A stretch of 64,000 bases of DNA from Schmidtea polychroa (lineage: Eukaryota), in assembly GCA_044892525.1 (NCBI GenBank), contig CM097885.1, forward strand, positions 162,564,001-162,628,000. The letters run 5' to 3'. The notes beneath the pieces are model-generated. The model saw nothing but the letters and a program-made list of their open reading frames with translations. It was not told the origin of the DNA and ran no database searches. Below are positions 19,329 to 41,830 of this stretch, one piece after another. A program made the translations under genes and the position numbers. Position 1 is the stretch's first letter, and every line of letters starts with the position of its first letter.

Positions 19329-19773
19329 TACTAAATTTATATTTAAAATGTTAGTGTAAATTATATAATTTAATTTTAATTGTATTTTTAAATTGCATAT
19401 ATTTTGAATATTAATAAATTAATTTTTATTTCTATTGTCTAATTTCATCAATAAGTTTAAAAAGTCTAACTGATAATAAATTAATTTCTTATTTACAATT
19501 ATTTTATAAATTATAAATTATATTATTATATTATATTAAATTATATTAATATAATATAATAATATAAAAATAATATAAAATTTAATTATATTAAATTATA
19601 TTAAAATATATTAAATTATATTATTATAAATTATTATGAATTTACTACGATTCATTTAATTTTTTTGATTGAAAAGGATAATATATCTAATAATTAATAT
19701 TTTAAATTATCTTTTGTGATAATTATTTTCGAAATTGAAATATTTAGTGTAAAATAAATTTAAATAATAAATT

Positions 19774-21016
19774 AGTAGGTAGATAGTGGCCTACGGGAAC
19801 AATTACCCCCCCCCCCCCCCGGGGGGGGGGGGGGGGTTTGTTCCCAAATTTTTATTACGCAATTGTTCCCAACTCATTTTTTTGCTTTCAGGGATTTTTG
19901 GTCCAAATTTTTTTTTATCACACTATAGTGAGAGGGTCTTGATGGTCCTGGGAATTTCTATACAAAAATCCGACTACCACTAAAAAAGCCAAGGATTATT
20001 CACACTATAGTGAGGGGGTCTCGATGGTCCTGGGATTTTCAATACAAATAAAATTTTTTCTATACAAAAATCCGACTACCACTAAAAAAGCCAAGGATTA
20101 TTCACACTATAGTGAGGGGGTCTCGATGGTCCTGGGATTTTCAATACGAAAAATTTTTTTCTATACAAAAATCCTACTATCAATAAAAAAGCCAAGGATT
20201 TATCACGCTATAGTGAGGTGAGTCTCCTTGGTCCTGAGAAATAGGTGGTCTACACTAAAAAACGTGGTAAATTTTTCAATTACAGTAAATTACGGTCCAA
20301 ATTTTTCAATTAAAGTAAATAATGGTTCTAAAAATTAAATTAAAGTTAATTATGGCTCAAATTTTTCAAATAAGGTAATTATGGTTCTAAAAAATTAAAT
20401 TAAAGTTAATTATGGCTCAAATTTTTTAATTAAAGTAAATAATGGTTCTAAAAATTAAATTAAAGTAAATTATGGTTCTAAAATATTAAATTACAGTAAA
20501 TTATGGTCCAGATTTTTCAATTAAAGTAAATAATGGTTCTAAAAATTAAATTAAAGTTAATTATGGCTCAAATTTTTCAATTACAGTAAATAATGGTTCT
20601 AAAAATTAAATTAAAGTAAATTAAGGTTCTAAAAAATTAAATTAAAGTTAATTAAGGTCTAAATTTAAAATTAAGTAATCAATGGTAAAAAATTTTAAAT
20701 AAGTAATAATTTTTAAATAAGTAAATTAAAGTAATAATTTTTAAATAAGTAAATTAAAGTAATGTAATAAGTAAATTAAAGTAAGATTTTAAAATTTATT
20801 AACAAAAAGTTGAAGGTGTTTGAGAATTGAAATTTTTTAATGGAAATTTTTATGAAATATTTTTTTAAGTAATTTTTAATGGAAATTTTTATGAAATATT
20901 TTTCAATGATAATTTTAGATGGAAATTTTTAAGATAACTTTTAATGAAAATTTTTATGAAATATTTTTCAAAGTCAAATGAAAATTTTAACGAAATAATA
21001 ATAAAAATAATAATAA

Positions 21017-21069
<53 letters not shown>

Positions 21070-21148
21070 TATCGACCAAATACATAAAAATGAACTAGAC
21101 ACATAAAACACAAACAATTAACAAATGTAAAGATATAAAATTTATTCA
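19774..21148 (+). repeat. Left TIR of the Polinton (1375 bp) with internal tandem arrays
   Basis: Reverse complement of 34332-35984. Contains a C15G16 hairpin, ~80-105-bp CACTATAGTG repeats, ~30-bp AT-rich repeats and an (ATA)n tract. Confidence 0.92.
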
Positions 21149-21154
21149 ATAAAA

Positions 21155-24100
21155 TTAGTCCTCATCGGACAAAATAACGTCATCGATATCGATGTCATCT
21201 TCTTCATTAAATTCTTCCTCATCTTCTCCAAAATCTTCATTTAATTCTTCCTCATCTTCTCCATCATTTTCTCCATCATTTTCTCCATCATTTTCTGAAA
21301 CATTTTCTGCAACAATTTCTCCAACATTTTCTCCAATATTTAATTCACTTAATCTTACATGCCCATATGCAAGACTAGCGTTTTTCCCCACCCAAACCCT
21401 TTTGTCATCTTTGTTTGTTAGTGCTATTTTTGTGTTTTTAATTGTAAAAATTTGATGATTTTTGCTTGTTATTTTAGTCTGAGGAACCGAAAAAATCTGG
21501 TTAGTGTTATAACAATCCAGGTATGACTGATGTTTTATGTCACTACCTTTCAATGTTACACCTTTAGCCTTTTTTGTTTCCTCATCACCCAACAAGCTAT
21601 AACATTTAGGTCTAAGAAAAACCCACTCCTTATATTTAAGACCTTTATTCTCGTCTTTGAACTTTCCAATGACTGAATCAAGGTTCTTACTATATAAGGA
21701 ATGACAACTATTGTAATTGGAAGTATCTAATAAATTATCTCGAATCATTGCAGGTAAAAGAACCTCAAGTTTGCAGTTAATGACTTCGAGGAAAAAAGAA
21801 TCTGTATCACCTGCAACGATATTAATTTTACAATTAAACTCATTGCGAAATGATTCCAGATCCTTATATTGCAATTCATACATTCTAAGTTTAGATAGAT
21901 CAAGTACAGATTGACCAATGTAACTCGGTCTATCTAAACATATAGAATCTGAATTCAATAGTGTTGCAATTAAATTATCAGCTATTTTAATAGATTTTTT
22001 AAAAGTCGGTTTTGACGAATATTTAACTAATTTACCGGCAGTTGTACAAAGACGAAGATTCATTCTTCTCTTTAAATTTTCAACTGTTTTGCCGTATAAA
22101 CTGTTATTTAGCAATTTATAATAATTTTTATCTAAGTTATTTACGCTTTTTGATCTTAATTCGGTATTTGTATCTATATATTTTTTAAAAATTGGTGATT
22201 GCTTAAATCTTACACCTCTATTTACATGTGTTACTTTAACACCAAGTTCTAAATATAATTTTAATAATCTCCAATGAATAACATAATTAGATTTTGGAAG
22301 ATGAGTTAATAATAATTTTTCAACCTTAGACCCAGCAGGTTTCATTTTTTCAGCAGCTACAGGGAAATCATCCAACTTATCATGAAGCTCAGAAGGAATT
22401 ACAAGATCAACTTCAAGTGTGTATCCATAAGACAAAGATTCAAGATTTAAATTCCTACATTCATCCAGTATTTTATCAAATCCATCAAGAACCCAACAAA
22501 ATTCGCCACAAGGTAATGATTGACTTAAAGCCCACCCATAAAGATTATTAATATCTATATAAAGTAACTCGGTGTTCTCGTCGGTTTTTACGTAATGCTT
22601 ATTCACAAAAGTAAGACCGCCTCTTATTCCACCCTCATAAAAGCTAAACATTTCGTTTTCAGTTATGAGTTCAATTGGTTCATTTAAAGACATTAATGCA
22701 GAAGACCAAGACATGCCTGGAATTCCGAAATAATTCAAAGGTTCTAATCTATTGTGAGCAATTGATTTCAACCTAAACTGATGAAAGAAATCAGCCAAAA
22801 GAAAACAATCAAGTTTTAGGTAGATCATCATATAATCTAATAAAGTTCTGCAATTAGATTCTACCCAAATCTCCTGAGCTTTTTCATACTCAAGCTCAGT
22901 GACACCCTCCCAGATTGGTGGTAATTCATACGTAGTTTGTAGAACATCTAAAGAAGTGGCGAAATTATAAGGGAAGATTCCTTTTTCACCTACTATGGTG
23001 CCAGAAAAAGCAGAATTAGTAAAAGGCAAAGAATTCAAAGTTTTGACTGCTTTAGCCAAAGAATCATTGACAAATTGATATGAATCAATGAATCTTATGC
23101 TAATTTTGCCTAAATGAGCAATCAAAGATATAAATTTTTCCGTAGTTATTGGGATGCACCCTAAATTCCAATTTTTAAATTTATTTAATCCATATTTAAG
23201 TATATGATGCATATCGTATCCCTTCAAGTTGTGAAATACGATAGGCAAAATTTTATTTATTTTTCTATTTACGTTACATGTGCTACAAGCTGCACCCAAG
23301 TATTTGCCCGTAAAATGATCGTGATCTCTAACAGGATCCACGATAGATTTCAAACAAAGATAACAAACCGTTGAATTAATGAATTGTTGTTGCTCAATTT
23401 TAGTTAATTTAATCATTGGTTTCCTACCCATTTTATAATAAAAAGGAAGAACCTTATTTAATGCTATATCCTCTATAGCACTTAAAAAACTCTCGACGCA
23501 ATCTAAACCTATAAACTGTTGATAGGATTTAGATCCGTCAAAGTTATTTACTAGTAAAAGACCAGCAGATATTGGCATGTGTCGCTGAAAATGAACATTA
23601 TCACAAGGTAAAATAGCCTCAAAATCGGCATAAACTACGAAAGGAGGAGTTACTGTTTTCGACCAGTCAGTAAACTGTAAGAATTTATTTTCAGGGAAAG
23701 TATAAAGAGTAGTTCCTAATTGATTGCGTTTGCATAATATTTCATGTTTTTCTAGTGCGTTTCTGTTGTTAAAACCATTCAAACAACGATGACACCATAT
23801 TGATCGTATGCGTGTAGGACAACTAGTGTTTATGTGGCAATTCAGTAACCTATTTAAATTGCTTATAGCAATGTAATGGAAATTGTTCCCTTTATTTAAT
23901 AATAGTAAATTAATTACTGTTCCATTTAAAACTTTGGAACGATGTATAATGTCTAAATGGGGGTGTTTTAAAACGTAATTATCTGTTAATTGTTTGTTAT
24001 TGTCATAAGAAAAAACATTAATTATTAAACCAGGATTTTTGGCCTCGAATTTTCTAATATCTTTTAATTTCATTGGTAAGTCTAATGGATTATATATTAA

Positions 24101-25351
24101 CTCAGATAAATTATAACTGGATGTTCTATTTCTATATTGTTTAATAACTTCATCATATTTTAAAATAGCTAAAATGCTATATAAAAAACACGAATCGTCG
24201 GTGTTTTTTACATTAATTAAACAATATTTATTTTTTAGACAAGTAGGTAGTTCAATGAAACTCCTACCACTTAATCTACTTAGCCTACTTATCTTTGTTA
24301 TGGTGAAGTGGATTTCAGTTATTTTTTTTATGATCCAACTACTTCCTAACTCTGTGATATTACTTATTTTCTCGTTTAGTTCCCTAATGCCTTCGTCAAA
24401 AAATGAGGCAGTTAAAGGTTTTGCGTAATTCGAAATATTATTAACCTTTATTTCCCCGTCTTTTTCAAATTCGATTGTTATTCCGAATTGAATTTTGACG
24501 GAGCCTAATTCGTTAATAATATCTCGTAATTTTATAATTAATTGTTCTGGAAATATTATTTCCTTTATATTCAAGTTACTTGTATTTAGACTTAAAATTT
24601 GATGTGTACCCCTTAAATCTTTTTGTACTATGGGTACATTACCTCCTATTTGTACATTAGTAGTCGAAGAGTCGAGTGAAAGATTATCAAATTCATTATT
24701 GGGTTCGCCTACATCCCAAGAGTCGAGTGAAAGATTATCAAATTCATTATTGGGTTCGCCTACATCCCAAGAGTCGAGTGAAAGATTATCAAATTCATTA
24801 TAGGATTCATCAACTAATCCGACCTGGGATTCAACAAAAGGCAATCCATCATTGGATTCAGCAAAAGACAATCCATCATCGGATTCAGCAAAAGACAATC
24901 CATCATTGGATTCAGCAAAAGACAATCCAACATTGGATTCAGCAAAAGGCAATCCATCATTGGATTCATCAACTAATCCGACCTGGGATTCAACAAATGT
25001 ATTTAATTTAATTTTTTTATTAGTAGTATTTATTTCAATAGTTGAAGGACGTTTAAAAATAACATCTTTTTTAGAATTGAACCTATCTAAATGTTGTTTA
25101 TGCTTATTATAAAAAACGCTATATGTTAAGGGCTCGCTAATCTTACATATGGGGCATATAAAAAAAGTTTTATTATAGTATTTTTTAGAATAATAATTCT
25201 CCATTATAGAATGGCAATTATTATGTTCTTTCGACGAACAATAATTTGGATAAAGTATACCTAAAATATATACATTTAAAAATTTGGCTAAAACATTTGA
25301 TAAAAATAATACTATTAAAATTTTCTTATAATTTTGCATGTATGCATCCAA
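21155..25351 (-). CDS. Protein-primed family B DNA polymerase (pPolB) with N-terminal extension
   Basis: Exo motifs YADFEA, FHNLKGYD, YLKLDC; Pol motifs DINNLYG, KLLNNSLYGK, GDTDS. Also an EndoVII-like CYLC...DHDHFTG...CxxCN insert and a C2H2-like CHRC...HEILC. Confidence 0.96.
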   Translation of the reverse strand: MDAYMQNYKKILIVLFLSNVLAKFLNVYILGILYPNYCSSKEHNNCHSIMENYYSKKYYNKTFFICPICKISEPLTYSVFYNKHKQHLDRFNSKKDVIFKRPSTIEINTTNKKIKLNTFVESQVGLVDESNDGLPFAESNVGLSFAESNDGLSFAESDDGLSFAESNDGLPFVESQVGLVDESYNEFDNLSLDSWDVGEPNNEFDNLSLDSWDVGEPNNEFDNLSLDSSTTNVQIGGNVPIVQKDLRGTHQILSLNTSNLNIKEIIFPEQLIIKLRDIINELGSVKIQFGITIEFEKDGEIKVNNISNYAKPLTASFFDEGIRELNEKISNITELGSSWIIKKITEIHFTITKISRLSRLSGRSFIELPTCLKNKYCLINVKNTDDSCFLYSILAILKYDEVIKQYRNRTSSYNLSELIYNPLDLPMKLKDIRKFEAKNPGLIINVFSYDNNKQLTDNYVLKHPHLDIIHRSKVLNGTVINLLLLNKGNNFHYIAISNLNRLLNCHINTSCPTRIRSIWCHRCLNGFNNRNALEKHEILCKRNQLGTTLYTFPENKFLQFTDWSKTVTPPFVVYADFEAILPCDNVHFQRHMPISAGLLLVNNFDGSKSYQQFIGLDCVESFLSAIEDIALNKVLPFYYKMGRKPMIKLTKIEQQQFINSTVCYLCLKSIVDPVRDHDHFTGKYLGAACSTCNVNRKINKILPIVFHNLKGYDMHHILKYGLNKFKNWNLGCIPITTEKFISLIAHLGKISIRFIDSYQFVNDSLAKAVKTLNSLPFTNSAFSGTIVGEKGIFPYNFATSLDVLQTTYELPPIWEGVTELEYEKAQEIWVESNCRTLLDYMMIYLKLDCFLLADFFHQFRLKSIAHNRLEPLNYFGIPGMSWSSALMSLNEPIELITENEMFSFYEGGIRGGLTFVNKHYVKTDENTELLYIDINNLYGWALSQSLPCGEFCWVLDGFDKILDECRNLNLESLSYGYTLEVDLVIPSELHDKLDDFPVAAEKMKPAGSKVEKLLLTHLPKSNYVIHWRLLKLYLELGVKVTHVNRGVRFKQSPIFKKYIDTNTELRSKSVNNLDKNYYKLLNNSLYGKTVENLKRRMNLRLCTTAGKLVKYSSKPTFKKSIKIADNLIATLLNSDSICLDRPSYIGQSVLDLSKLRMYELQYKDLESFRNEFNCKINIVAGDTDSFFLEVINCKLEVLLPAMIRDNLLDTSNYNSCHSLYSKNLDSVIGKFKDENKGLKYKEWVFLRPKCYSLLGDEETKKAKGVTLKGSDIKHQSYLDCYNTNQIFSVPQTKITSKNHQIFTIKNTKIALTNKDDKRVWVGKNASLAYGHVRLSELNIGENVGEIVAENVSENDGENDGENDGEDEEELNEDFGEDEEEFNEEDDIDIDDVILSDED

Positions 25352-25406
25352 TCAAAATTAATTATTTGCTATAAATGATAATTTAATGAAATAAATTTAA
25401 CAAAAA

Positions 25407-25839
25407 ATGTCTACTATAAATAGTATCCTATTAGAAGAAAATAGTACATCAGTTATAGGTATGGTATGTAAACCTCCTATTCAATTCCTTCAATATAATA
25501 TGTACTATTTGAAATATCCTATTACTTATTCGTTCAAGGTAATTTTTTATTTAATTATTTAATATTAATTTGTTATAGGAACCAGTTAATTTAAAAACAT
25601 GTCAATTCAATATTCAAATTGGAGATATTGGGGAAGAAGATAGAAAAAATCTTGGAGAAATTCTTAAATTAATTAATAAAGAAATGATTTTTAATGAAAA
25701 ATTTACATTTATCAATTGTGAAAAAGGGTGTAAATTAGACGAAGATAAAAAATCAAAAGTGCGAATACTTATTCAAGGAGTCAAGATAAATGGAGTTATA
25801 ATTAAACCAATTTGGAAAATTACAAATGTTTTTGAATAA
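25407..25839 (+). CDS. Spliced 130-aa ORF, possible OB-fold ssDNA-binding protein (exons 25407-25538, 25579-25839)
   Basis: ATG 25407; 40-nt phase-0 intron GTAATT...TTATAG (25539-25578); exon 2 open for 87 codons to TAA inside AATAAA. The SSB call rests only on the C-terminal KVRILIQGVKINGVIIKPIWKI strand pattern and its position next to pPolB. Confidence 0.7.
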
Positions 25840-25914
25840 ATATTTAAGTGTTATTTTAAATGTTGTTGAAAAAAATTTTAAAGTTAATAAGTATTTAATA
25901 AGGGTCAGATTATT

Positions 25915-26945
25915 ATTAAAGAGTACTGCATGCTCACTGCAGACTATTATGTAGCTACGTGCTCACTGTAGACTACATTATTATATTAAAGAGTACTGCA
26001 TGCTCACTGCAGACTATTATGTAGCTACGTGCTCACTGTAGACTACATTATTATCATTATAAAAAAAATTTGCGAGGGATTTCCCCTTATTTCAAAATAA
26101 ATATCATTAATAATAATTTCATTATAAAATATTATTTAAAAATGTTAATAATTTCATCATTATAAAAAAATTTTACGAGGGATTTCCCCTTATTTCAAAA
26201 TAAATATCATTAAAAAATAACATTAATAATAATTTCATTATAAAATATTATTTAAAAATGTTAATAATTTCATCATTATATAAAAAAAAATTTTTACGAG
26301 GGATTTACCCTTATTTCATTATAAAATTTTATTTAAAATATTAGTAAAATATTAGATTATAAAAAATGAGTGAATTTCCTCTTAAGATCAAATAAAATTT
26401 TATTAAAAAATTATATAAAAATATCATTAATAATCATTAAAAAATATTAGTAATTTCATCTTATAAAATTTTATAAAAAATTGATAAAAATACTTACATT
26501 TGACATTTTTGTTCATAGTTTCATTCATTTCAGAATTTTTGTTCATTTTCATAGTTTTTTAGTTTCAATCTTTTTTATCTAAAAAATAATTAAATTTTAA
26601 TAATTAAAAAATAAAATTCTTACAATCCTTGGTACTAGCAAATTATGAGCAAATTTTAAAAACAAATCATTTATATACTTCTTCTTCTACTTAATACATT
26701 ACGTAATAATTAAAGGATTAAATTTGATACCATGCGTAATAATTAAAAGATTAAATAACTTACATAATAATTAAAGGATTAAATAACTTGCATAATAATT
26801 AAAGGATTTAATACCTTACATAATAATTAACTTAATTAAAGATTTAGTTTAATAATCAACTAAAATTTAAATTTTAATAATCAATTATATTGAATTAATA
26901 ATCAACTAAAAATTTATTGAAATAATCAGCTAAAATTTATTGAAA
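25915..26945. repeat. Non-coding repeat-array spacer inside the Polinton
   Basis: 2 x 70-bp unit (25921, 25991); 3 x GAGGGATTT(C/A)CCCTTATTTC units (about 26074, 26177, 26298); ~28-bp TAATAATTAAAGGATT array (26700-26830); AATAATCAACTAAAATTT repeats. Confidence 0.8.
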
Positions 26946-26966
26946 ACAACTTTTTATTATAAAAAT

Positions 26967-27345
26967 TTATTTCATTGACTTTAACCAAGCCAAACAATGT
27001 TGTCCACATGTTTTTGTTATAGGGTTTTGGTAACGTATTCGATTGTATTCAATCGGCATTGACATTGATTGTAGTTTATTGATTAATATAGGTGGATAAT
27101 AGAATCCCATTGGATCAAATGCATATATTTTGTCTGGTTTCACGTATACTGCAAGCCAATGTTCACCATTCAGATTAGCAGATTGAGTATTTACAATTAT
27201 TGCTTTGTTGACATCTAAATAAGGTATTTTGTCTAATGGGAAAACACCTAGAAATTCTTTTCCTAGTAATTTTCTTCCGATAACATGTATCTGAATAGAA
27301 CTAAATTAATAATAATTAAATAATTTAAATTAATTCTTACTTCAT
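26967..27345 (-). CDS. Adenain-type cysteine protease (PRO), spliced: exon 1 27345-27341 (ATGAA), exon 2 27300-26967; 112 aa
   Basis: Removing the 40-nt GTAAGA...TTTAG intron (27340-27301) gives MNSIQIHVIG...FLGVFPLD...IVNT...GEHWLAV...FDPMG...Q...TCGQHC, with the His, Asp, Gln and Cys catalytic motifs. Confidence 0.92.
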
Positions 27346-27379
27346 ATTTGATTAATTGATTTTCGATATTTGGTTTATA

Positions 27380-28603
27380 TTATACCAAAACAGTACGAGT
27401 AGATGTAATTTGAATTTCTTTTTCAAAAACTCCATATACGATTACAGAAACAGCTTCAGTAAGTGAAGATGCGAATTTAATATCTAATCGCAAATTTCCA
27501 CTTTGTGGTAACTGACTTTGATGAAGATCAAAATCTGGTGCCAATACGAATGTAAAGAATGGATACTTGCTCTTAAAATCAGACATGGTGATACCACAAT
27601 TCATATTTTTATTTAGATAACCCATATTTCTAATAATCGATTGCATATAACTTGTACTATAATCATCATTCTCAAAATCTTGACTATATTTTTCGCGATA
27701 ATCACTTCCTTTACTTAAAGTTATGGACTTGACATTAAAGTGATCAAATAAAGAAAATGATTCTGAAAACGATCCACTAAATCTTTTACTAGATTGAAAT
27801 GCAACAAGTATAAAATTAGGTAATCGTCTATCTCCAAATATTTGTTCTTTATAAAAAGAGGAAGAACCAATAGGTAATGAGAAATCAACAACTTCTTTGC
27901 TTCTTAAAGGATAAATTGCATTTTTGGTAGACAGACCAATTTGATGTCCTGCCAAAACCGATGGTTCAACACGAACTCTTCTAACCATTAATTTTGCGTC
28001 TAATAATAAAATTTTCGGTTCAATTTTCGCACAAGTTAAACTAAGTGTTGGATTTGATCTTGTTAATTTAATTTGAACACTAACACCTGGTAGTAAATAT
28101 TTAGGTTGATCAAAGAAATCAAATTGAAGTGGGGAACATAAAGAAAAGGATTTTGATTTTTCAATCCATGTTTTTCTCGTAAGATCTTTGTTAGTATACC
28201 CCATTCCACCTAAAGATGTTCGTTTAGTATCTCCGTCATAATTTATAAGTGTTTCAATTAATGCTTTGTGGGCAAATCTATCATTTGATCCTTCAACTTT
28301 GATTGAATTAAAAATTAATTCAACATCTTTAAAAAGGGTTTGGAAGAAGAAATTATTTGGAATTACTTCTGATTCGCCTAAATTCTCACCTAAATTATTA
28401 ACAACTTTCAATTGAATATATAACAAAGTATCATTCAAATCTAAATATTCAGTCTGCGATCCATTTATGTAAAATTGAATCGAAGAAGAACCGGCATCTG
28501 TAATTGAATTTCTTGGGTATACATCTTCAAATGCTCCATGTTCAATCACTGCTTGGGGAGAAGGTCTATCAAAAAGACATAATTCTGATTTAGCACTAAT
28601 CAT
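27380..28603 (-). CDS. Major capsid protein (double jelly-roll, Polinton PY/hexon-like)
   Basis: KSELCLF N-terminus, YLDLNDTLLY, QFDFFDQPKYLLPGVSVQIKLTRS and GNLRLDIKF; 407 aa; sits in the structural block. Confidence 0.9.
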   Translation of the reverse strand: MISAKSELCLFDRPSPQAVIEHGAFEDVYPRNSITDAGSSSIQFYINGSQTEYLDLNDTLLYIQLKVVNNLGENLGESEVIPNNFFFQTLFKDVELIFNSIKVEGSNDRFAHKALIETLINYDGDTKRTSLGGMGYTNKDLTRKTWIEKSKSFSLCSPLQFDFFDQPKYLLPGVSVQIKLTRSNPTLSLTCAKIEPKILLLDAKLMVRRVRVEPSVLAGHQIGLSTKNAIYPLRSKEVVDFSLPIGSSSFYKEQIFGDRRLPNFILVAFQSSKRFSGSFSESFSLFDHFNVKSITLSKGSDYREKYSQDFENDDYSTSYMQSIIRNMGYLNKNMNCGITMSDFKSKYPFFTFVLAPDFDLHQSQLPQSGNLRLDIKFASSLTEAVSVIVYGVFEKEIQITSTRTVLV

Positions 28604-28998
28604 TTTTCAAAGATGGTACCATATCCTTTCATTCTTTTGTTTATATGTTTCTTCATAATTTTTCGGCGTTTAAGTATTCCGCCTTTTTGTTCTTTATCAT
28701 TTTTAAATACATCGGATACTTTATTAATTACTTCAGGTAAATGTTGCATCACAGCTGGTAATGATTCTTTAATTTCAGAAATTGCATTTGATTTTAAAGC
28801 AGGCAAGATATTTGCATTGTTATTTATTACGTCATTAGCTGTTTTCATACCAAAATTTCCTATTCGTCTAAGAATTGGGAGTGCAAATCTACCTATTGTC
28901 TTCAACCAACCGGTTCCATATTGTTTACCAACAAAATATGGTAAATCACCACCCGATTGGTTACTACTATAAAAATGTATTATGTCAGGATTACTCAT
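28600..28998 (-). CDS. Small virion-associated protein with amphipathic segment (pVI/pX-like)
   Basis: QSGGDLPYFVGKQYGTGWLKTIGRFALPILRRIG pattern as in small conserved Polinton ORFs; basic C-terminus. Confidence 0.7.
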   Translation of the reverse strand: MSNPDIIHFYSSNQSGGDLPYFVGKQYGTGWLKTIGRFALPILRRIGNFGMKTANDVINNNANILPALKSNAISEIKESLPAVMQHLPEVINKVSDVFKNDKEQKGGILKRRKIMKKHINKRMKGYGTIFEK

Positions 28999-30007
28999 TT
29001 ATTTTACGAAAATGTAATGTCAAGTATGTTTTATCTTCTTTTCCAAATATATATTTTCCACTATCATCTCGTATATTGATTTCTATATTGTTTATATATG
29101 AAGACGATACAGGTAAGTACATTGGATTCTTTTCAATTATTTGTACTAAATCATCTTTTTTATGTTTTTCCACCCAAATACATTTCAAAAGAGGGACCAA
29201 TGTATCACCAACAATAATAGGTTCGATAATATTTGTATAGATCATCAATTGTTGATTGCGTTGTAATACTTCAGGTTCTTTAAAACCAATAATAAGTTTG
29301 TCAGTATATGCTTCTTCTAATAATCCTAAACTATTGGCTAAAAATTTACTAAATTGAACTTTACTGACATCATCATCCATTACAATTTTAACGATTTTTC
29401 CTTTTTGAATATCAACAGATTTAAATGGACGAGGATAAAAGAGTGATAGTTGATCATTTATTTGTGAAAGATCTGTAATGATATTTTCTTCGAATGTATC
29501 TGTATACTCGACATCGTAATAATATTGTATAGTTAATCGAATTGTATCAAACTTTATTTTTCGATTATTTGGAGGAATAGTGATTTGGTTCAAGGCTTTT
29601 TTAAAAGTTATTTCTTTTTCTGAAAATCCCAATTTTTGCGCTTCTTTAATACTATCGAATTCTACTTTAAAAGGAAAATATTTACAATTAATGTTCAATG
29701 TATTTCCATCAATATATATTAAATAAAATGGAGAGTCGTGACTGATTGTATATTCATTTTTTTCTTGGTTAAAGTAAAAGTATTCATAACTTGTATGTAA
29801 TACACTTTTACTATATTTGACATTTGAATTACTGTAAAAAGGAAAATAATTATACACAAAGGTAAAGTCCATGAGAGCTACTTCCCATTCACCATCCAAG
29901 TAAATAGGATTTTGAAATTCGACATTAAATTTACCAGCTTCATTATTTGGATGAGTCTGAGGACAACTATTAGAAGGTAAATTCACATAAAAATCTTTTT
30001 TAATCAT
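28991..30007 (-). CDS. Minor capsid protein (penton-like), paralog B
   Basis: FYVNLPSNS...FQNPIYLDGEWEVAL N-terminus; IYTNIIEP...VPLL...NPMYLPV...NIEINIRDDSG...LTLHFRK C-terminus. Confidence 0.88.
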   Translation of the reverse strand: MIKKDFYVNLPSNSCPQTHPNNEAGKFNVEFQNPIYLDGEWEVALMDFTFVYNYFPFYSNSNVKYSKSVLHTSYEYFYFNQEKNEYTISHDSPFYLIYIDGNTLNINCKYFPFKVEFDSIKEAQKLGFSEKEITFKKALNQITIPPNNRKIKFDTIRLTIQYYYDVEYTDTFEENIITDLSQINDQLSLFYPRPFKSVDIQKGKIVKIVMDDDVSKVQFSKFLANSLGLLEEAYTDKLIIGFKEPEVLQRNQQLMIYTNIIEPIIVGDTLVPLLKCIWVEKHKKDDLVQIIEKNPMYLPVSSSYINNIEINIRDDSGKYIFGKEDKTYLTLHFRKINE

Positions 30008-31025
30008 TTATTTTACGAAAATGTAATGTCAAGTGTGTTTTTGTATCTCTACTAAATTTTATTAATTTTCCACTATCATCTCGTATATTGATTTCAATGT
30101 TGTTTATAGAAGAATTAGAAATTGGTAGATACATTGGATTCTTCATTTCTAGTTGCACAATTTCTCCTTGTTCATATTTTTTTATCCAAATAGATTTCAA
30201 TAACGGAACTCTTACATCTCCAACAGTCAATGGTTCGATAATATTTGAGTAAATAAACATTTGTTGATGATGATTAAATAACTTTGGAATTTTTGTTCCA
30301 ATAATTTCTTTCTCTGTAAATGTTTGTTTCTTTAATCCCAATGTTTTTGTTAAATTTTTATCAAAGGTTATTGATGAAATGTTATCAGCAAGACTTATTT
30401 TAACCAATTCATTATTTTGTATTTTTAAATCTTTAAAGGGAGACGGATTAATTGTCATTAACTGACCATGTATTTCAGATAAAGTATTGATGTATAATTC
30501 ATCTTCGAAATAATGTTCAAATTTTGTTTTTTCAACAACACTTATAATTATACCAAATTGATCAATTGTTTTATCTTCTGTAAATTTTGGTAATTTAATT
30601 CGCAAATGATCACTATCACTAATAACCGATACTGATTTTAATCCAAATTTAATAGCATGTTCAAAATCTGGAAACGTTATTTTAAATGGAACATGTGGAC
30701 AAACAACAACCAAATTCTCATATCTTTCAATGAACATGTCAACTTCAGGAGTATTTTTAGGATTTATTACTTCAAAGGTTCGATTTGAATTATTTATTCT
30801 AAAATATTTAATTTCTTCATCCATCTTTACTTTTTCATATTGTATCAATGAATTACTGTAATAAGGAAAAGTATTATACACAAAGGTAAAGTCCATGAGA
30901 GCTACTTCCCATTCACCATCCAAGTAAATAGGATTTTGAAATTCGACATTAAATTTACTAGCTTCATTATCGGGGAAAATAAGAGGACAACTATTAGAAG
31001 GTAAAATAATATAAAAATCTTTCAT
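30000..31025 (-). CDS. Minor capsid protein (penton-like), paralog A
   Basis: Same terminal motifs as paralog B; the central ~200 aa are highly divergent. Confidence 0.88.
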   Translation of the reverse strand: MKDFYIILPSNSCPLIFPDNEASKFNVEFQNPIYLDGEWEVALMDFTFVYNTFPYYSNSLIQYEKVKMDEEIKYFRINNSNRTFEVINPKNTPEVDMFIERYENLVVVCPHVPFKITFPDFEHAIKFGLKSVSVISDSDHLRIKLPKFTEDKTIDQFGIIISVVEKTKFEHYFEDELYINTLSEIHGQLMTINPSPFKDLKIQNNELVKISLADNISSITFDKNLTKTLGLKKQTFTEKEIIGTKIPKLFNHHQQMFIYSNIIEPLTVGDVRVPLLKSIWIKKYEQGEIVQLEMKNPMYLPISNSSINNIEINIRDDSGKLIKFSRDTKTHLTLHFRKIND

Positions 31026-31030
31026 AATAT

Positions 31031-32179
31031 TTATTTAATCAATTGATTTTCAGATATCCAAGATGGAGTTTCATATCCATGCCATTTAACATAGTATTGT
31101 TTATATTTACCATCTTTTTTGGTTTTTAAAATCTTTTGAATTCTAAATATTGTAGGAGCAGGAATTACTTGGAGTTCTTGTTCATAGAATTTACCAGTGA
31201 TTGGTTTGTTTTCATGATCAACTATCACATACATGACAGGATTCTGTTTTGTATCGATTTTAAAAATTTGATATACTTCATCACTCCAATTATTATCAAA
31301 GTTTTTGATGAATGGTGAAGAATTGATTTTACTAATTCTTACATGATCACCAACCTTGTATTTCGGTTTATTGATTTTTTCTGACTTTGTTTGATTTTTA
31401 GTAAAATCTGCAGGTGTTTGTCCTTTTAATCCTCTGTGTGGTGAATGATTGTAACTGAAAATAATTTTTGGCAAAACATTTATCCAAGTTTTATTACCTT
31501 GATATACAAAATATTTTTTCAAGCGTTCTCTTAAAGTTCGATTAAATCGTTCTACGTGAGCAGCTTTGAACTGAGAAAATACCGAGTAATGGTTTATTCC
31601 TTTGATAACCTCTTTAACTTTGCTGTTATAAAATTCTTTACCTAAATCATATATTTAAAAATTAATTAATTAAATTTAATTACCTAAATCCGTTTGTAAA
31701 TTAATAGGTTTACCATCTGCAAACATTTCTTTTATCGCATCAGCCATTTCATTTGCAGATTTAGTTTTTGTAGGAACAGCACGAGCATATCTATTAAAAA
31801 CATCTATACAAGTCAGAATATATTTGTACCCCTTGTTAATTTTTGAATAAGGTATCATTTCCATCAAATCCATTTGCCATACATCATTGTTTCCAATTGT
31901 TTTGTATGGTCTTGTTGGAAAACGTTTCAACATTGGTTTATTTAAACTATATGCTAATTGATTAGATAACCATTTCTGAGTTTCTTTCTTTGAATTATTC
32001 ACTCGTTTTGTTAATTTTTCTACGCCACCAAAACCATCTGGATCTTTTGGGTTTGTCCATATGGTTTTTAACTTTTTCTCTATTGTTTTCACTTTTTTCA
32101 CTTTTGTTTTCACATTTGTTTTCACTTTTGTTTTCATTTTTTCCACTTTTGTGTTGGTTTTGTGATACGTTTCCTTCAT
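31031..32179 (-). CDS. Retroviral-like (RVE) integrase with C-terminal chromodomain; exons 32179-31684 and 31641-31031; 368 aa
   Basis: WQMDL (D1). QTDLG|KEF (D2) is restored by removing a 42-nt GT-AG intron (31683-31642). VERFNRTL (E). YYVKWHGY...SWI chromodomain. Confidence 0.92.
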
Positions 32180-32248
32180 TATTACAACAAGTTGTCAAAA
32201 TATTAAAATCTACAATATTTTTATTTGGTAATGAACTCTTGATACCCA

Positions 32249-32575
32249 TTAAGAACTTAATGATGAGATTGCACTAATTGCAGATAAGACTATAGGAATT
32301 AGTGCACCCAAGAACCCTCCTTTTTGTTTATATATTATCTTTCTCATTAGACGACGATTTTTTGTATCAACTAGAGATAAAAGTGATCTTTTATGTCTTT
32401 GCAATACTAATCTTTTAGCTTTAGTTATATTTACATTACCGCGGACAACATTTATAATAACTTCAAGTAAATCATCAATAACAAATGATGGAAAAGACTG
32501 TAAAATTGATATTCGTTTCGAATTTGGTGCCTTTATTAAAGCATTAAAATATGGTAAGCTCCGTTCAAATTTCAT
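32249..32575 (-). CDS. Basic core-like protein (pVII-like Polinton ORF), 108 aa from the ATG at 32575
   Basis: EVIINVVRGNV...LQRHK...KQKGGFLGALIP pattern. The track's start at 32620 is a non-ATG codon. Confidence 0.7.
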   Translation of the reverse strand: MKFERSLPYFNALIKAPNSKRISILQSFPSFVIDDLLEVIINVVRGNVNITKAKRLVLQRHKRSLLSLVDTKNRRLMRKIIYKQKGGFLGALIPIVLSAISAISSLSS

Positions 32576-32604
32576 TATTATTATTAATTTACGCGACGGT
32601 TTGT

Positions 32605-32757
32605 TTATAATTTGATCCACTTCTTGATTTGTTTCTTAGTTTTTGTAGTTTTTGTACCTTTTGATCCACTTTTTGTTTTCTTTGTACGTTTTGTTTTCTT
32701 GGTAATTTTCTTCGAAACACTTGGAAGATTTTTAACAACTACTTTTTTAAATGACAT
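32605..32757 (-). CDS. 50-aa Lys-rich basic protein (candidate DNA-condensing protein)
   Basis: MSFKKVVVKNLPSVSKKITKKTKRTKKTKSGSKGTKTTKTKKQIKKWIKL: 19 Lys, 1 Arg, no acidic residue. Fills the gap between the ATPase and core-like genes. Confidence 0.65.
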   Translation of the reverse strand: MSFKKVVVKNLPSVSKKITKKTKRTKKTKSGSKGTKTTKTKKQIKKWIKL

Positions 32758-32776
32758 GATTAATTTTATTTAGTTT

Positions 32777-33400
32777 TTAGTTTTGTTTATAAATCGTAAC
32801 ACCGTTTATATTAAAAATATCAGTTCTAATACGCATATCATCTGGACATTGTTGTGTAAAATCAAAAAATAAATATCCATGAGGAATTTTTGTTGCATCT
32901 TGGAATGAATCAATCAAAAATTTTCTATTATTTGGATAAGCTTGTCTTGCAAGAAAATCTATTATTGTTTGATCTCTAGGATTTTTGAAAATAATTAAAT
33001 ATTGGACATTTAAATTACGTGTTCTATGACTTCCACCTTGATGAAAAAGATTTTGTGTAATGAAAATAACTGTAACTCCACAATGTCTACTGATTTTTGT
33101 AAATAAATTATTAAAATCTTTTTCTTTATTTGCTTCCTGGTACAGATCATCGATAATAATAACATCACCTTGACGTAATCTAGATGACCAATTTTTATCA
33201 AATCCTTTAATTATTGTCATTTTTAATTTACAGAAACTGTTTTGAGTCAATCCATGTTCTTCATCTGCACCTCGATGCCAATATATTTTATTAAATTTAG
33301 ATTTAAACATGTTTGATTGTAATAAATTACATACAAATAAAGTTTTCCCGCTTCCACTAGGTCCAACTATTTGATATACTGCGTCATTTCTTAATTCCAT
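32777..33400 (-). CDS. A32/FtsK-like genome-packaging ATPase
   Basis: Walker A GPSGSGKT, Walker B IIIDD, FTKISRH, FITQN. Confidence 0.95.
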   Translation of the reverse strand: MELRNDAVYQIVGPSGSGKTLFVCNLLQSNMFKSKFNKIYWHRGADEEHGLTQNSFCKLKMTIIKGFDKNWSSRLRQGDVIIIDDLYQEANKEKDFNNLFTKISRHCGVTVIFITQNLFHQGGSHRTRNLNVQYLIIFKNPRDQTIIDFLARQAYPNNRKFLIDSFQDATKIPHGYLFFDFTQQCPDDMRIRTDIFNINGVTIYKQN

Positions 33401-33450
33401 TTTTTAATTAAATTATTTTATTTAATTTGTTTATAATTACAATAATTAGA

Positions 33451-33927
33451 ATGATCAGCAACATTAATTATAGAGGAAGATGTGTAGTTAATGGAATGAA
33501 GTTTCCATCAGGAAAACCTCAACATGTCGTGGACAGAAGTGGAAAATATCCAATTTTATTCTTCAAGAGCGGGAAATGTAGGATAATGGGATGTAAGAAA
33601 CCATTACAGGAAGGCGATCTCAAATATCAGATTCAAGATTTACAAATCCAATCAATTACATTAACGCTAGATATGGGTACATGCATTGATTTAAATGCAT
33701 TGTCAAGGAAAACCGATAGTTACTACGAGCCTGAAATATTTCCAGCTTTACGTATTCTCAAGTATAACCCCCTATGTGTAAATGTTTTTTCAAGTGGGAA
33801 AGTTGTTATATTAGGGATTAAAACATTTGATTATTTTAATCAAATTCAAGAAATTCAGAAATTCATTAAATCATTAACTATAAATATCACAACAAATGAA
33901 GAAATATTGGAATATTTATTAAGTTAA
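33451..33927 (+). CDS. TATA-binding-protein-like protein, 158 aa
   Basis: Two TBP-like repeats: ILFFKSGKCRIMGCK and YEPEIFPALRI...NVFSSGKVVILGIK, plus SNINY and IQSITLT strands. ATG at 33451 (the track uses TTG 33427). Confidence 0.85.
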   Translation: MISNINYRGRCVVNGMKFPSGKPQHVVDRSGKYPILFFKSGKCRIMGCKKPLQEGDLKYQIQDLQIQSITLTLDMGTCIDLNALSRKTDSYYEPEIFPALRILKYNPLCVNVFSSGKVVILGIKTFDYFNQIQEIQKFIKSLTINITTNEEILEYLLS

Positions 33928-33990
33928 TTAAATTAATTTAATTAATTGTGTTTAAATTAACTGAATATCTACAATAACAAAAATTCAAAA

Positions 33991-34338
33991 ATGGATGACG
34001 ATAAGCAAGCTTACATATTCCAGACTATATTAACGAAGATGGAAGAATTGTTCCCGAATATAAAGAACAGACTTTCATATTGTGCTCCGGAATTATTAGC
34101 TTATAGAATCAAGCAATTAACTGGGATCAATATAGAAGAACTTATACGAAGACATTTCGAATCTGTACAAGAATCAAGATTTAAATGCATAGACGATTGT
34201 GAAGTATGTATGGATCCGATGAAATTACCATGTCCGTTTAGATGTAGATGCTGCCAAGAATATAAGATGAAAGAAGTTGTTCATATTTTACTAGCAGAAT
34301 TAAGAAGAGCTTATTACAAGCAAATATTGGATGAATAA
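33991..34338 (+). CDS. Cys-rich protein of unknown function, 115 aa
   Basis: ATG in A-rich context; CIDDCEVCMDPMKLPCPFRCRCC cluster; the stop falls in the AATAAA at the TIR boundary. Confidence 0.75.
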   Translation: MDDDKQAYIFQTILTKMEELFPNIKNRLSYCAPELLAYRIKQLTGINIEELIRRHFESVQESRFKCIDDCEVCMDPMKLPCPFRCRCCQEYKMKEVVHILLAELRRAYYKQILDE

Positions 34339-35984
34339 ATTTTATATCTTTACATTTGTTAATTGTTTGTGTTTTATGTGTCTAGTTCATTTTTATGTAT
34401 TTGGTTGATATATTATTTTTATTATTATTATTATTATTTTTATTATTATTATTTCATAAAAATCTTCATTAAAAGTTATCTTAAAAATTTCCATCTAAAA
34501 TTATCATTGAAAAATATTTCATAAAAATTTCCATTAAAAATTACTTAAAAAATTATTCCATAAAAATTTCTATTAAAAATTACTTAAAAAATTATTTCAT
34601 AAAAATTTTCATTAAAAAATTTCAATTCTCAAACACCTTCTATTATTTCAACTTTTTGTTAATAAATTTTAAAATCTTACTTTAATTTACTTATTACATT
34701 ACTTATTTAAAAATTATTACTTTAATTTACTTATTTAACTTTAATTTAAAATTTTTGACCATTGATTACTTAATTTTAAAATTTGGACCTTAATTAACTT
34801 TAATTTAATTTTTTAGAACCTTAATTTAGTTATTTGAGCCCATTCATTACTTTAATTTAAAAATTTGAACCATAATTTACTGTAATTCAAAAATTTGGAC
34901 CTTAATTTACTTTAATTTAATTTTTTAGAACCATAATTTACTGTAATTGAAAAATTTGGACCAATACTTACTGTAATTTAATTTTTAAGAACCATTATTT
35001 ACTTTAATTTAATTTTTTTAGACCCATAATTTACTTTAATTAAAAAATTTGAGTCATAATTTACTTTAATTTTTTACCATTATTTACTGTAATTAAATTT
35101 TTTAGAACCATTATTTACTTTAATTGAAAAATTTTGACCATTATTTACTTTAATTGAAAAATTTGAACCATAATTTACTTTAATTTTTAGAACCATTATT
35201 TACTGTAATTTAATTTTTAGGACCATTATTTACTTTAATTGAAAAATTTACCACGTTTTTTACTGTAGACCACCTATTTCTCAGGACCAAGGAGACTCAC
35301 CTCACTATAGTCTGAAAAATCCTTGGCTTTTTTAGTGTAGACCACCTATTTGTATTGAAAATATCCTGAGACCTTAAATTACCATGCTTTTTTAGTGTAG
35401 ACCAGCTTTTTGTATTGAAAATATCCCGAGACCTTAAATTACCATGCTTTTTTAGTGTAGACCACCTATTTCTCAGGACCAAGGAGACTCACCTCACTAT
35501 AGTCTGAAAAATCCTTGGCTTTTTTATTGGTAGTAGGATTTTTGTATTGAAAATCCCAGGACCATCGAGACCCCTTCACTATAGCGTGAAAATTCCATGC
35601 TTTTTAGTGGTAGTCGGATTTTTGTATAGAAATTTTTTTTTTGTATTGAAAATCCCAGGACCATCGTTTTTGTATAGAAAAAATTTTTTCGTATTGAAAA
35701 TCCCAGGACCATCGAGACCTCCTCACTATAGTGTGAATAATCCTTGGCTTTTTTAGTGTAGACCAGCTTTTTGTATTGAAAAAAATTTTTTGTATTGAAA
35801 ATCCCAGGACCATCGAGACCCCCTCACTATAGTGTGATAAAAAAATAATTTGGACCAAAAATCCCTGAGAGCAAAAAATGTGAGTTGGAACAATTGCGTA
35901 ATAAAAAGTTGGAACAATTTTACCCCCCCCCCCCCCCCCCCGGGGGGGGGGGTAATTGTTCCAGTGGGCTACTATCTACCTACT
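34332..35984 (-). repeat. Right TIR of the Polinton (1653 bp)
   Basis: Inner boundary TGAATAAATTTTATATCTTTACATTTGT matches 21121-21148 exactly; has extra repeat units around 35290-35520. Confidence 0.92.
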
Positions 35985-36169
35985 TAAATTGCTATTATTA
36001 TGGCATTAAAGGACTTTATATATTATATTTTAAAAAAATCTAATCATTATTTCTCAGTCAAATACCATTCTCAGTTTGATATGAAGTTAACAAGTGGATT
36101 ACATACTCCTTTATCAGAATAAATGTTTATCAATAACAAGTTATTACAATATTTTTATTCGTTAATAAA

Positions 36170-41174: not shown

Positions 41175-41830
41175 ATGAAATGCCAAGGCTATATGGCAAA
41201 GGCAATTGAAGAAAGCAGCATTGCCGATTATTTTTTTAAAAGCGACATCCTTCCTGATGCCCAATTCTTTCTTCTAATCCGCGCACGCAACAATATCTTA
41301 AAATTGAACTATTCACCTCACGGCCTTAAGACCAAAAAATCAATACTCTGCAGACATTGCCACGCTCACCCCGAAACACCTGCACACATCTTTAATCACT
41401 GTCAGGCTCGTATAAATGAACGTAGAAATAAACACAATAATGTCTTACAGACCGTAGCAGAGTTTCTTATTTCTATCAACTATGAGGTAGATATAGAAAA
41501 AATATCTGAAGGAACCTCCTCTACTCTCAAATCGGATCTTCTACTTAAATTAAAGCGTAATAAATCTATCCACATCTTGGATATTAAGGTTCCATTTGAC
41601 TCAAGAGAAAATTATGATAACTCTAGAAAAAATAATTACAACAAATATAAGGGACTAGGCGAGGAAATTGGAAGACTACATAAATGCCCACACACTTTAC
41701 ATGCTCTTTTAATAGGCACTTTAGGGTGATGGGATAAGAAAAATGACACAATACTCAAAATTATCGACCTATCCAATAATGAGATAAAGGAACTTGCGAA
41801 AAAACCCTGTGTAGCCGCAATTAATAGCAG
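41175..41830 (+). pseudogene. 3' end of an RLE-type (R2/NeSL/Utopia-like) non-LTR retrotransposon
   Basis: CRHC...ETPAHIFNHC zinc knuckle, KHN, SD...LDIKVPF, YNKY, IGTLG*W (Trp codon region follows a premature stop). Confidence 0.88.

Follow-up and report, generated by a model that had tools for sequence, protein, structure and literature searches.

A stretch of 64,000 nucleotides of contig CM097885.1 (assembly GCA_044892525.1; the whole stretch is hereafter called the window, and positions are counted from its first letter) contains an integrated Polinton/adintovirus-like element of about 16 kb that encodes, beside its virion genes, a reduced homolog of the TATA-binding protein (TBP). The gene is conserved across a clade of such elements, and the genes of their virion block are preceded by a variant TATA box, TATAAACA(A), of constant orientation and near-constant spacing. 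The reading I favour, with some reserve, is that this minimal TBP-fold protein, the product of a near-core gene of one Polinton/adintovirus-like clade, is an element-encoded core-promoter factor that reads TATAAACA(A) before the virion genes. The two features at the centre of the argument are the following.

19774..35984, unstranded: integrated Polinton/adintovirus-like element, 16,211 bp (its terminal inverted repeats, TIRs, reach these bases, with an identical 6-bp TAAATT on both sides)
33451..33927, plus strand: TBP-like protein, 158 aa plus stop (Pfam and PDB searches, AlphaFold2, Foldseek, family alignment)

The TBP-like protein and its family

A sequence-only reading of the window had proposed that the 158-aa open reading frame (ORF) at 33451-33927 is a TBP homolog, and had made the predicted structure its touchstone. 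The ORF matches Pfam PF00352 with an E of 3.4e-16 (59.3 bits for a cut-off of 22.9). Searched against PDB with phmmer, the protein retrieved TBPs only (best E 2e-13), and a profile built from 83 relatives reached TBP in the same database at 1e-20; in these sequence searches of PDB, all 35 matches are TBPs. Alignment of the family, with hhalign, to six canonical two-repeat TBPs, themselves recovered in the hidden Markov model (HMM) scan described below, gave a probability of 99.6% and an E of 1.5e-23. An AlphaFold2 model computed from the family alignment, without templates, has a predicted local distance difference test score (pLDDT) of 94.2 and a predicted template-modelling score (pTM) of 0.83. 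When this model was compared with PDB by Foldseek, the best 44 matches were all TBP, with about 172 columns aligned, template-modelling scores of 0.6-0.69 and 21-26% identity to the solved TBPs. According to the model, the 158-aa protein has the saddle made of two tandem repeats that form one curved antiparallel β-sheet, the very fold on which the sequence-only reading had staked its claim. The match is far beyond chance, and the product is a real TBP homolog, in a reduced, minimal form. The start codon at 33451 agrees with the N-terminus of the family, Met being present there in 73% of the 83 relatives. An exact-sequence look-up of six window proteins in the collection searched found none of them.

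The protein is laid out as a helix-less repeat 1 (residues ~1-50), a linker, a full repeat 2 (~60-128) and a long C-terminal helix. In the AlphaFold2 model, repeat 1 is made of strands 2-10, 25-28, 35-38 and 42-48, and repeat 2 of strand 62-74, helix 81-87 and strands 90-92, 100-102, 109-112 and 117-123, after which comes helix 129-157. Repeat 1 has therefore kept its strands and is without helices H1 and H2 in the model; in the hhalign alignment, a gap falls where its H2 would lie, and residues 1-13 are left unaligned. The full S1-H1-S2-S3-S4-S5-H2 topology, which would place four helices on the convex side of the saddle, is not found in both repeats, repeat 1 being helix-less. The shortening of repeat 1 had been noticed from the sequence, and it amounts to the loss of both helices; the further statement that both TBP repeats are present holds for the strands of both halves and for the whole of repeat 2, but repeat 1 is not a full repeat.

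F38, F97 and F113 fall on invariant Phe residues in the alignments with canonical TBPs, and conservation of the three within the family (83 sequences) is 100%, in agreement with the earlier count of three intercalating Phe out of four. The fourth DNA-kinking Phe, that of the repeat-1 stirrup, was not found: its position aligns to K22 or P23. F18 (89% conserved) lies 4-5 residues upstream of this position, and its counterpart in the alignment is the Tyr before the stirrup. In repeat 2, Ser68 takes the place of the central Asn (Ser in 96% of the family), a replacement that had also been spotted, and the central Thr positions are occupied by Met46 (100%) and Leu121 (70% Leu, 16% Thr). The central Asn of repeat 1 is probably N4 (99% conserved), in the strand that the sequence tools leave unaligned. 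In cellular TBP, TFIIB contacts the repeat-2 (C-terminal) stirrup, and the corresponding segment here, Y/F-E-P-E-L/I-F-P, is near identical to that of cellular TBPs (E93 95%, P94 96%, E95 100%, F97 100%, P98 84%). With a mean column identity of 38%, the residues invariant in the 83 sequences are F38, F97, F113, E95, M46, G47, C109 and N111; conservation of C43, C48 and C109 is 94-100%.

A word-indexed search returned 123 TBP-like relatives, mostly of 144-170 aa (range 97-275) and 35-68% identical. All come from metagenome or read-archive assemblies, none from NCBI or UniRef, and some had been automatically named TBP by the Joint Genome Institute (JGI). The HMM scan, which took in 1.84 billion cluster representatives, gave 59 clusters (50% identity) at E<=1e-30; of the best 150, most align to the profile over its whole length in one stretch. 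The family thus counts more than 100 diverged relatives with a common architecture and invariant residues. Every relative on a contig with detectable neighbours adjoins the packaging ATPase, the major capsid protein (MCP) or the family B DNA polymerase (PolB) of the same element type, and some are whole contigs of ~16 kb in the window's layout, with a Bcl-2 homolog between the ATPase and TBP genes. Three positions of the TBP gene are found in the relatives: divergent from the ATPase gene, as in the window; co-directional and upstream of it; and after the MCP and protease genes. To remove ascertainment bias, a search based on the MCP was used and five long contigs were opened. The TBP gene was present on each of them, even where MCP identity was as low as 46%, one copy (on L069) being in pieces. 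Since it is present on 5/5 long contigs found by way of another gene, the TBP gene is a near-core gene of the whole clade and not an oddity of the window copy.

Assemblies from soil, sediment and viromes commonly contain the clade. Scans of IMG/VR with the TBP, MCP and ATPase alignments found no clade member. The sole TBP match there, on a 44.7-kb viral contig (L010, IMGVR_UViG_3300020438_000074), is a canonical two-repeat TBP, with a heliorhodopsin, a family B DNA polymerase and both subunits of ribonucleotide reductase as neighbours; this contig, mirusvirus- or giant-virus-like, has no relation to the Polinton clade. Nothing was found when prokaryote genomes were scanned. Near the TBP gene, relatives carry accessory genes that are homologs of animal cell-death and signalling genes, namely Bcl-2 (L003-L008), RING (L001, L006) and TRAF-MATH (L068); the accessory cassette of the window copy consists of the TBP gene and a 115-aa Cys-rich ORF only.

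The box before the virion-block genes and its proposed reader

In the window, the TBP gene lies head to head with the packaging ATPase gene, as the sequence-only reading had it, the two ATGs at 33400 (minus strand) and 33451 (plus strand) leaving a gap of exactly 50 bp. This spacer and the virion block contain the following features.

32777..33400, minus strand: A32/FtsK-type packaging ATPase, 207 aa (Pfam Pox_A32, E 8e-7, 29.2 bits, cut-off 22.8)
33401..33450, unstranded: divergent intergenic region, 50 bp, between the ATPase and TBP ATGs
33427..33435, minus strand: TATAAACAA box, 35 nt before the ATPase ATG (motif search of upstream regions)
27373..32810, minus strand: nine more TATAAAC boxes in gene orientation, with starts at 27373, 28639, 29090, 30102, 31099, 32326, 32603, 32785 and 32804 (motif search)

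The motif TATAAACA(A) is common to the upstream regions of the virion-block genes. Within the 6-kb block of the window (27373-33435), TATAAAC is found 10 times in sense and 0 times in antisense. Over 32 loci, which represent 105.7 kb of virion block, the sense and antisense counts are 133 and 2 for TATAAAC, and 123 and 0 for TATAAACA. No comparable bias affects the canonical variants, for which the counts are 37 and 49 (TATAAAA), 33 and 27 (TATAAAT), and 20 and 10 (TATAAAG). The distance to the start codon is also constrained. The first T of the box lies 32-38 nt before the ATG in 17 of 20 ATPase genes, 18 of which have a box within 200 nt; all 15 genes for an adenovirus protein-X-like (PX-like) protein have a box, with its first T 33-39 nt before the ATG in 11; and for most MCP genes the distance is 36-51 nt. 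The gene of a 132-aa block protein has its box ~99 nt before the ATG. The box is conserved amid diverged flanks, even at 37% ATPase identity. Conversely, a box within 200 nt upstream was found for 1 of 54 TBP genes, and the TIRs of the window have no TATAAAC box. No covariation of TBP residues with box variants was seen, the box being too invariant to show any.

The possibility that TATAAACA is a poly(A) signal was considered and rejected: in divergent layouts the box precedes the first gene of the block where there is no co-oriented upstream gene, its distance to the downstream ATG is fixed, and it frequently lies inside the preceding ORF.

The upstream regions of the TBP genes (52 loci) have motifs of their own, TTGTTT(T)A around -55 to -65 and, just a few bases upstream of the ATG, ATCATAATT. 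Read in reverse complement, the 3' half of the TATAAACAA box looks like TTGTTT(T)A, and in the 50-bp spacer of the window the two are the identical site, read on opposite strands.

The simplest account of these data is a trans/cis pair, in which the virion module is marked by a private TATA variant and the element supplies the TBP-fold factor to match. The TBP gene would be transcribed from its own promoter class, without the TATAAACA box. The TBP-like protein would then bind the variant TATA box TATAAACA(A), which is oriented with the gene before each gene of the virion/integrase block, typically ~35 nt from the ATG, and its repeat-2 stirrup of cellular type (Y/F-E-P-E-L/I-F-P) would recruit host TFIIB and RNA polymerase II (Pol II). 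Because repeat 1 has lost both helices, the protein would offer no surfaces for the cellular TBP regulators, and the virion genes would be read by an element-specific route, in an order of expression that starts with the TBP gene. In cellular complexes, repeat 1 of TBP contacts the 3' part of the TATA box. It is suggestive that the altered repeat 1 would fit the departure of the box from the canonical consensus, a C at position 7, in this 3' part. Likewise, a TFIIB stirrup that has been kept while the repeat-1 helices have been lost suggests recruitment of Pol II without the usual TBP regulators. The sequence-only reading had imagined a promoter-recognition factor for the structural genes; the conserved, oriented TATAAACA box before the virion-block genes, and not before the TBP gene, speaks indirectly for this idea. 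The data show the fold, its conservation, the tie of the gene to the element, and the motif with its orientation and spacing; that the protein reads the motif, recruits TFIIB, escapes the cellular regulators and sets the order of expression described is what I infer.

A bolder version, which I put forward tentatively and would not bet on at even stakes, is that a 16-kb integrating animal virus possesses a two-part, self-contained core-promoter system: a minimal TBP with a TFIIB stirrup and without regulator surfaces, and, in front of each virion gene, a TATA variant private to the element, TATAAACA. In this way the virus would switch host Pol II to the virion module independently of TFIID. If this is true, these elements would be the smallest known genome class with a TBP-based promoter code of its own.

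Several observations weigh against the protein being the reader of the box. Taken alone, its N-terminal 60 aa have no significant sequence match in PDB (E 0.35), and the strands of this half rest on the structure model. Because one kinking Phe is absent and the central Asn and Thr positions have changed (Ser68, Leu121, Met46), classical TATA binding may, judging from the residues, be weakened or altered. Several block genes have their box 75-105 nt before the ATG, within the preceding ORF. The loci are related, so that the box counts, including an earlier one over 27 loci (TATAAAC 100 to 2, binomial p 2e-27), are not independent events. The forkhead consensus is RYAAAYA, which the core of the box, ATAAACA, fits. 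Finally, since TATAAAC is close to the canonical TATA box, a host factor could be its reader.

This last point leads to an alternative in which the reader of TATAAACA belongs to the host, being a forkhead protein or the host's TBP, while the TBP-like protein acts otherwise on DNA, for example by bending or marking the AT-rich TIRs for replication or packaging. A forkhead reader would account for the match of ATAAACA to the consensus, but a distance fixed at ~35 nt from the ATG is what a core-promoter element typically shows, and not an enhancer site. Were host TBP the reader, the canonical TATA variants should be equally acceptable to it, yet they show no orientation bias. For either host factor, every long locus examined contains both the gene and the box, which speaks against a reader supplied by the host. 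As for another role on DNA, the TBP fold is used outside transcription too, DUF3378 co-matches being found on canonical TBPs, and the TIRs of the element are long, repeat-rich and AT-rich; they are, however, without TATAAAC box. On balance I regard this alternative as unlikely.

Somewhat harder to credit is the proposal that the protein is a decoy or competitor of host TBP, which would bind host TATA boxes or sequester TFIIB and partners like it, in complexes that the lack of repeat-1 helices would turn into dead ends, and so shut down host transcription or shift its balance to the benefit of the element. The TFIIB surface of the repeat-2 stirrup has kept the degree of conservation known from cellular TBPs, repeat 1 has no helices, and the accessory neighbours in the relatives (Bcl-2, RING, TRAF-MATH) are of a host-manipulation type, all of which would suit a decoy. 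It nevertheless leaves unexplained why an oriented TATA variant is kept at a fixed distance before the virion genes of the element itself, and DNA-contact residues unlike those of host TBP are a poor fit with competition for the same sites. That the gene is a decaying, functionless fragment of a captured host TBP gene is scarcely believable. The protein is shorter than any cellular TBP core and the L069 copy is in pieces, but decay is contradicted by conservation: the ORF is intact and of full length when compared with >100 diverged clusters that have the same architecture and invariant residues, and the AlphaFold2 model is very confident.

The element and its surroundings

The sequence-only reading had called the element a 16-kb Polinton, and 19774-35984 is indeed a real Polinton-type element with a 6-bp target-site duplication: its 16,211 bp comprise a PolB with protein-primed motifs, an integrase with rve and chromo domains, a packaging ATPase resembling A32, an adenain-like protease frame, an MCP of the double jelly-roll type and long TIRs. 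Besides the features given above, it is made up as follows.

19768..19773, unstranded: left target-site duplication, TAAATT (sequence reading)
19774..21150, unstranded: left TIR, with internal tandem repeats and a C/G homopolymer palindrome near its tip (inverted-repeat pairs I1-I25)
21155..25351, minus strand: protein-primed PolB, 1398 aa, intact (tblastn, 44-62% identity to the PolB ORFs of relatives)
26967..27305, minus strand: adenain-like protease frame, bounds being those of the open frame (tblastn with the L070 and L071 protease ORFs)
27380..28603, minus strand: MCP, double jelly-roll, 407 aa (AlphaFold2 and Foldseek)
28600..28998, minus strand: virion-block ORF, 132 aa (42-56% identity in relatives)
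28991..30007, minus strand: virion-block ORF, 338 aa (paralogous to the 341-aa ORF)
30000..31025, minus strand: virion-block ORF, 341 aa (tblastn against relatives)
31031..32179, minus strand: rve integrase with C-terminal chromodomain, interrupted frame (Pfam rve E 1.2e-8 and Chromo E 2.5e-4, on two parts)
31995..32249, minus strand: small Met-Gly ORF overlapping the integrase start codon in another frame (5' end conserved in L001, L002 and L009)
32249..32620, minus strand: adenovirus mu/protein-X-like core protein ORF (Pfam Adeno_PX, E 2.5e-6, 27.7 bits, cut-off 25)
32605..32757, minus strand: very basic, extremely Lys-rich ORF, 50 aa (an ORF of 49-62 aa in the same place in relatives)
33991..34338, plus strand: Cys-rich accessory ORF, 115 aa, downstream of the TBP gene (weak tblastn matches in L003-L007)
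34330..35984, unstranded: right TIR, made up as the left one (inverted-repeat pairs, sequence)
35985..35990, unstranded: right target-site duplication, TAAATT (sequence reading)

The TIRs are ~1.4-1.6 kb long, AT-rich and repeat-rich. About 30 nt inside each element end, at 19805-19838 and 35925-35953, ~16 C are followed by ~13-15 G in a perfect homopolymer palindrome, and inward of these palindromes arrays of ~50-110-nt tandem repeats fill the TIRs. Transcription of the minus strand meets, in order, the ATPase gene, the 50-aa ORF, the PX-like ORF, the Met-Gly ORF, the integrase gene, the 341-aa, 338-aa and 132-aa ORFs, the MCP gene, the adenain-like frame and the PolB gene. The plus-strand cassette beside the right TIR consists of the TBP gene and the 115-aa Cys-rich ORF, for which a Pfam search gave no match. 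Apart from the integrase and protease genes, all genes are intact, that of TBP included. A search of the whole window against Rfam gave no match.

By itself, the PolB ORF of the window has no Pfam PolB match and no PDB sequence match; the PolB ORFs of the relatives, where called as genes, carry PF03175. Around residues 650-700 its product has a weak Cys-rich segment resembling Endonuclease VII (Endonuclease_7, E 0.003), which is weak or faint also in the PolB-region ORFs of L067 and L069, and the N-terminal third of the ORF, when inspected by eye, resembles an OTU-type cysteine-protease domain, which is a candidate assignment. Between the PolB start and the protease frame, a region of ~1.5 kb (25400-26960) with a GC content of ~23-27% has no ORF >51 aa, where the relatives hold small ORFs; it could be made of decayed genes or be a regulatory region. 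The protease frame has no ATG at its 5' end and no Pfam match of its own, and it is matched without stop by the L070 and L071 ORFs, which have a weak or faint Pfam Peptidase_C5 match (45-47% identity, E 1e-28).

The MCP model has a pLDDT of 90.1, and its best Foldseek matches in PDB are the MCPs of iridovirus, Paramecium bursaria chlorella virus 1 (PBCV-1), mavirus and Sputnik (E ~1e-14). On a read-archive contig, L072 (Logan SRR25018252), the MCP is 99% identical to that of the window, so that a further public data set contains this element or one very near to it. Since a single gene of the relatives is matched by both, the 338-aa and 341-aa ORFs are paralogs, and some relatives have three ORFs of this kind in a row; together with the 132-aa ORF, they are candidates for the minor capsid (penton) protein. 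The integrase frame has three in-frame stops and no frameshift, and in the relatives it is a single ORF of 341-368 aa. It is a broken frame or, alternatively, contains a short intron shared with the closest relative, L009, since the L009 integrase is likewise called in two pieces. The ATPase of the window is 93% identical to that of L009. The ORF at 31995-32249 may be a separate small gene, the product of which is possibly N-myristoylated. The PX-like ORF likely starts at an internal ATG ~35 nt downstream of its TATAAAC box, its counterparts in the relatives being 108-111 aa long. It looks, like the 50-aa ORF, as if it encoded a DNA-condensing core protein of the adenovirus kind.

The element lies in transposon-rich, AT-rich surroundings (25-35% GC). 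Its flanks (17603-18961, 41175-41729, 51281-53401, 59648-61534) contain a pogo/Tc5 transposase, a fragment with a reverse transcriptase (RT) zinc finger, and two transposases of the hAT type with long intact ORFs. The named homologs of the flanking pogo transposase are all from animals, which, with the Bcl-2, RING and TRAF-MATH genes of the relatives, points to a metazoan host rather than proves one; the hosts of this element clade are probably animals.

Comparison with known systems

Like cellular TBP (PF00352), the element protein has a saddle that extends across its two halves, and it retains three of the four Phe that kink DNA as well as the repeat-2 stirrup. It differs in its size (158 aa for a core of ~180 aa), in a repeat 1 without H1 and H2, in the replacement of the repeat-1 stirrup Phe, in a Ser for the central Asn of repeat 2, in hydrophobic residues at both central Thr positions, and in being encoded by a mobile, virus-like element. 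Animals also have diverged TBP paralogs, TBPL1/TRF2 and TBPL2, whose DNA-contact residues are altered and which serve specialised promoter sets. Unlike the element protein, these host genes keep two full repeats with their helices. None of them is among the named matches of the element protein; no direct comparison was made.

Polintons and adintoviruses are considered to depend wholly on host transcription. A conserved element-encoded TBP with a matching box provides a concrete hypothesis for the timing of virion-gene expression. As a natural 'minimal TBP', the protein shows which parts of the saddle can be lost, and both the TATAAACA box and the TBP gene can serve as practical markers by which the clade is recognised and annotated.

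The gene is not wholly new. MELD viruses with an adintovirus-like PolB are given a 'TBP' gene in the legend of Fig. 5 of Starrett et al. 2021 (Virus Evol, PMC8502044), and, like the window element, these are mid-size linear dsDNA viruses that combine an adintovirus-like PolB, an integrase and a TBP-like gene. The two genes, the MELD one being known here by its name in that legend, probably belong to the same family. The paper names the gene in that legend only and does not analyse its architecture, distribution or promoters (PMC8502044). Apart from this legend, no study of a TBP from a Polinton, a Maverick or an adintovirus came up in full-text literature searches. Because of the JGI auto-annotation and of the legend, novelty is lower than the sequence-only reading had assumed: a TBP gene in a Polinton-type element is near-core in a whole clade, and such a gene had been named before. 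What appears to be new is the clade-wide conservation of the gene, the helix-less repeat 1, and the TATAAACA box with its strict orientation and spacing.

The giant-virus and mirusvirus TBPs (Nucleocytoviricota, of the African swine fever virus (ASFV) B263R type, and mirusvirus) are likewise TBP folds encoded by viruses, and they provide the best BFVD matches of the element protein (E 4e-8 to 1e-3). They are, however, proteins of 190-500 aa with two full repeats, 10-21% identical to the element protein, and belong to genomes of 100 kb to Mb size, most of which have their own RNA polymerase.

In concept, the closest parallel is with herpesviruses. Their late-gene TBP mimics, ORF24 of Kaposi's sarcoma-associated herpesvirus (KSHV), UL87 of human cytomegalovirus (HCMV) and BcRF1 of Epstein-Barr virus (EBV), are large proteins that act in a six-member complex. 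The element protein has no sequence relationship to them and gives weak structural matches only (E 0.015-0.022); in contrast to these mimics, it is 158 aa long and still near cellular TBP in sequence. A passage of PMC6541308 has the herpesvirus TBP mimic serve late TATT promoters. The two systems are alike in that a virus-encoded TBP-fold protein reads, or in the element would read, a TATA variant that departs from the canonical form and stands in front of late or structural genes, and draws, or would draw, host Pol II to them (PMC6541308).

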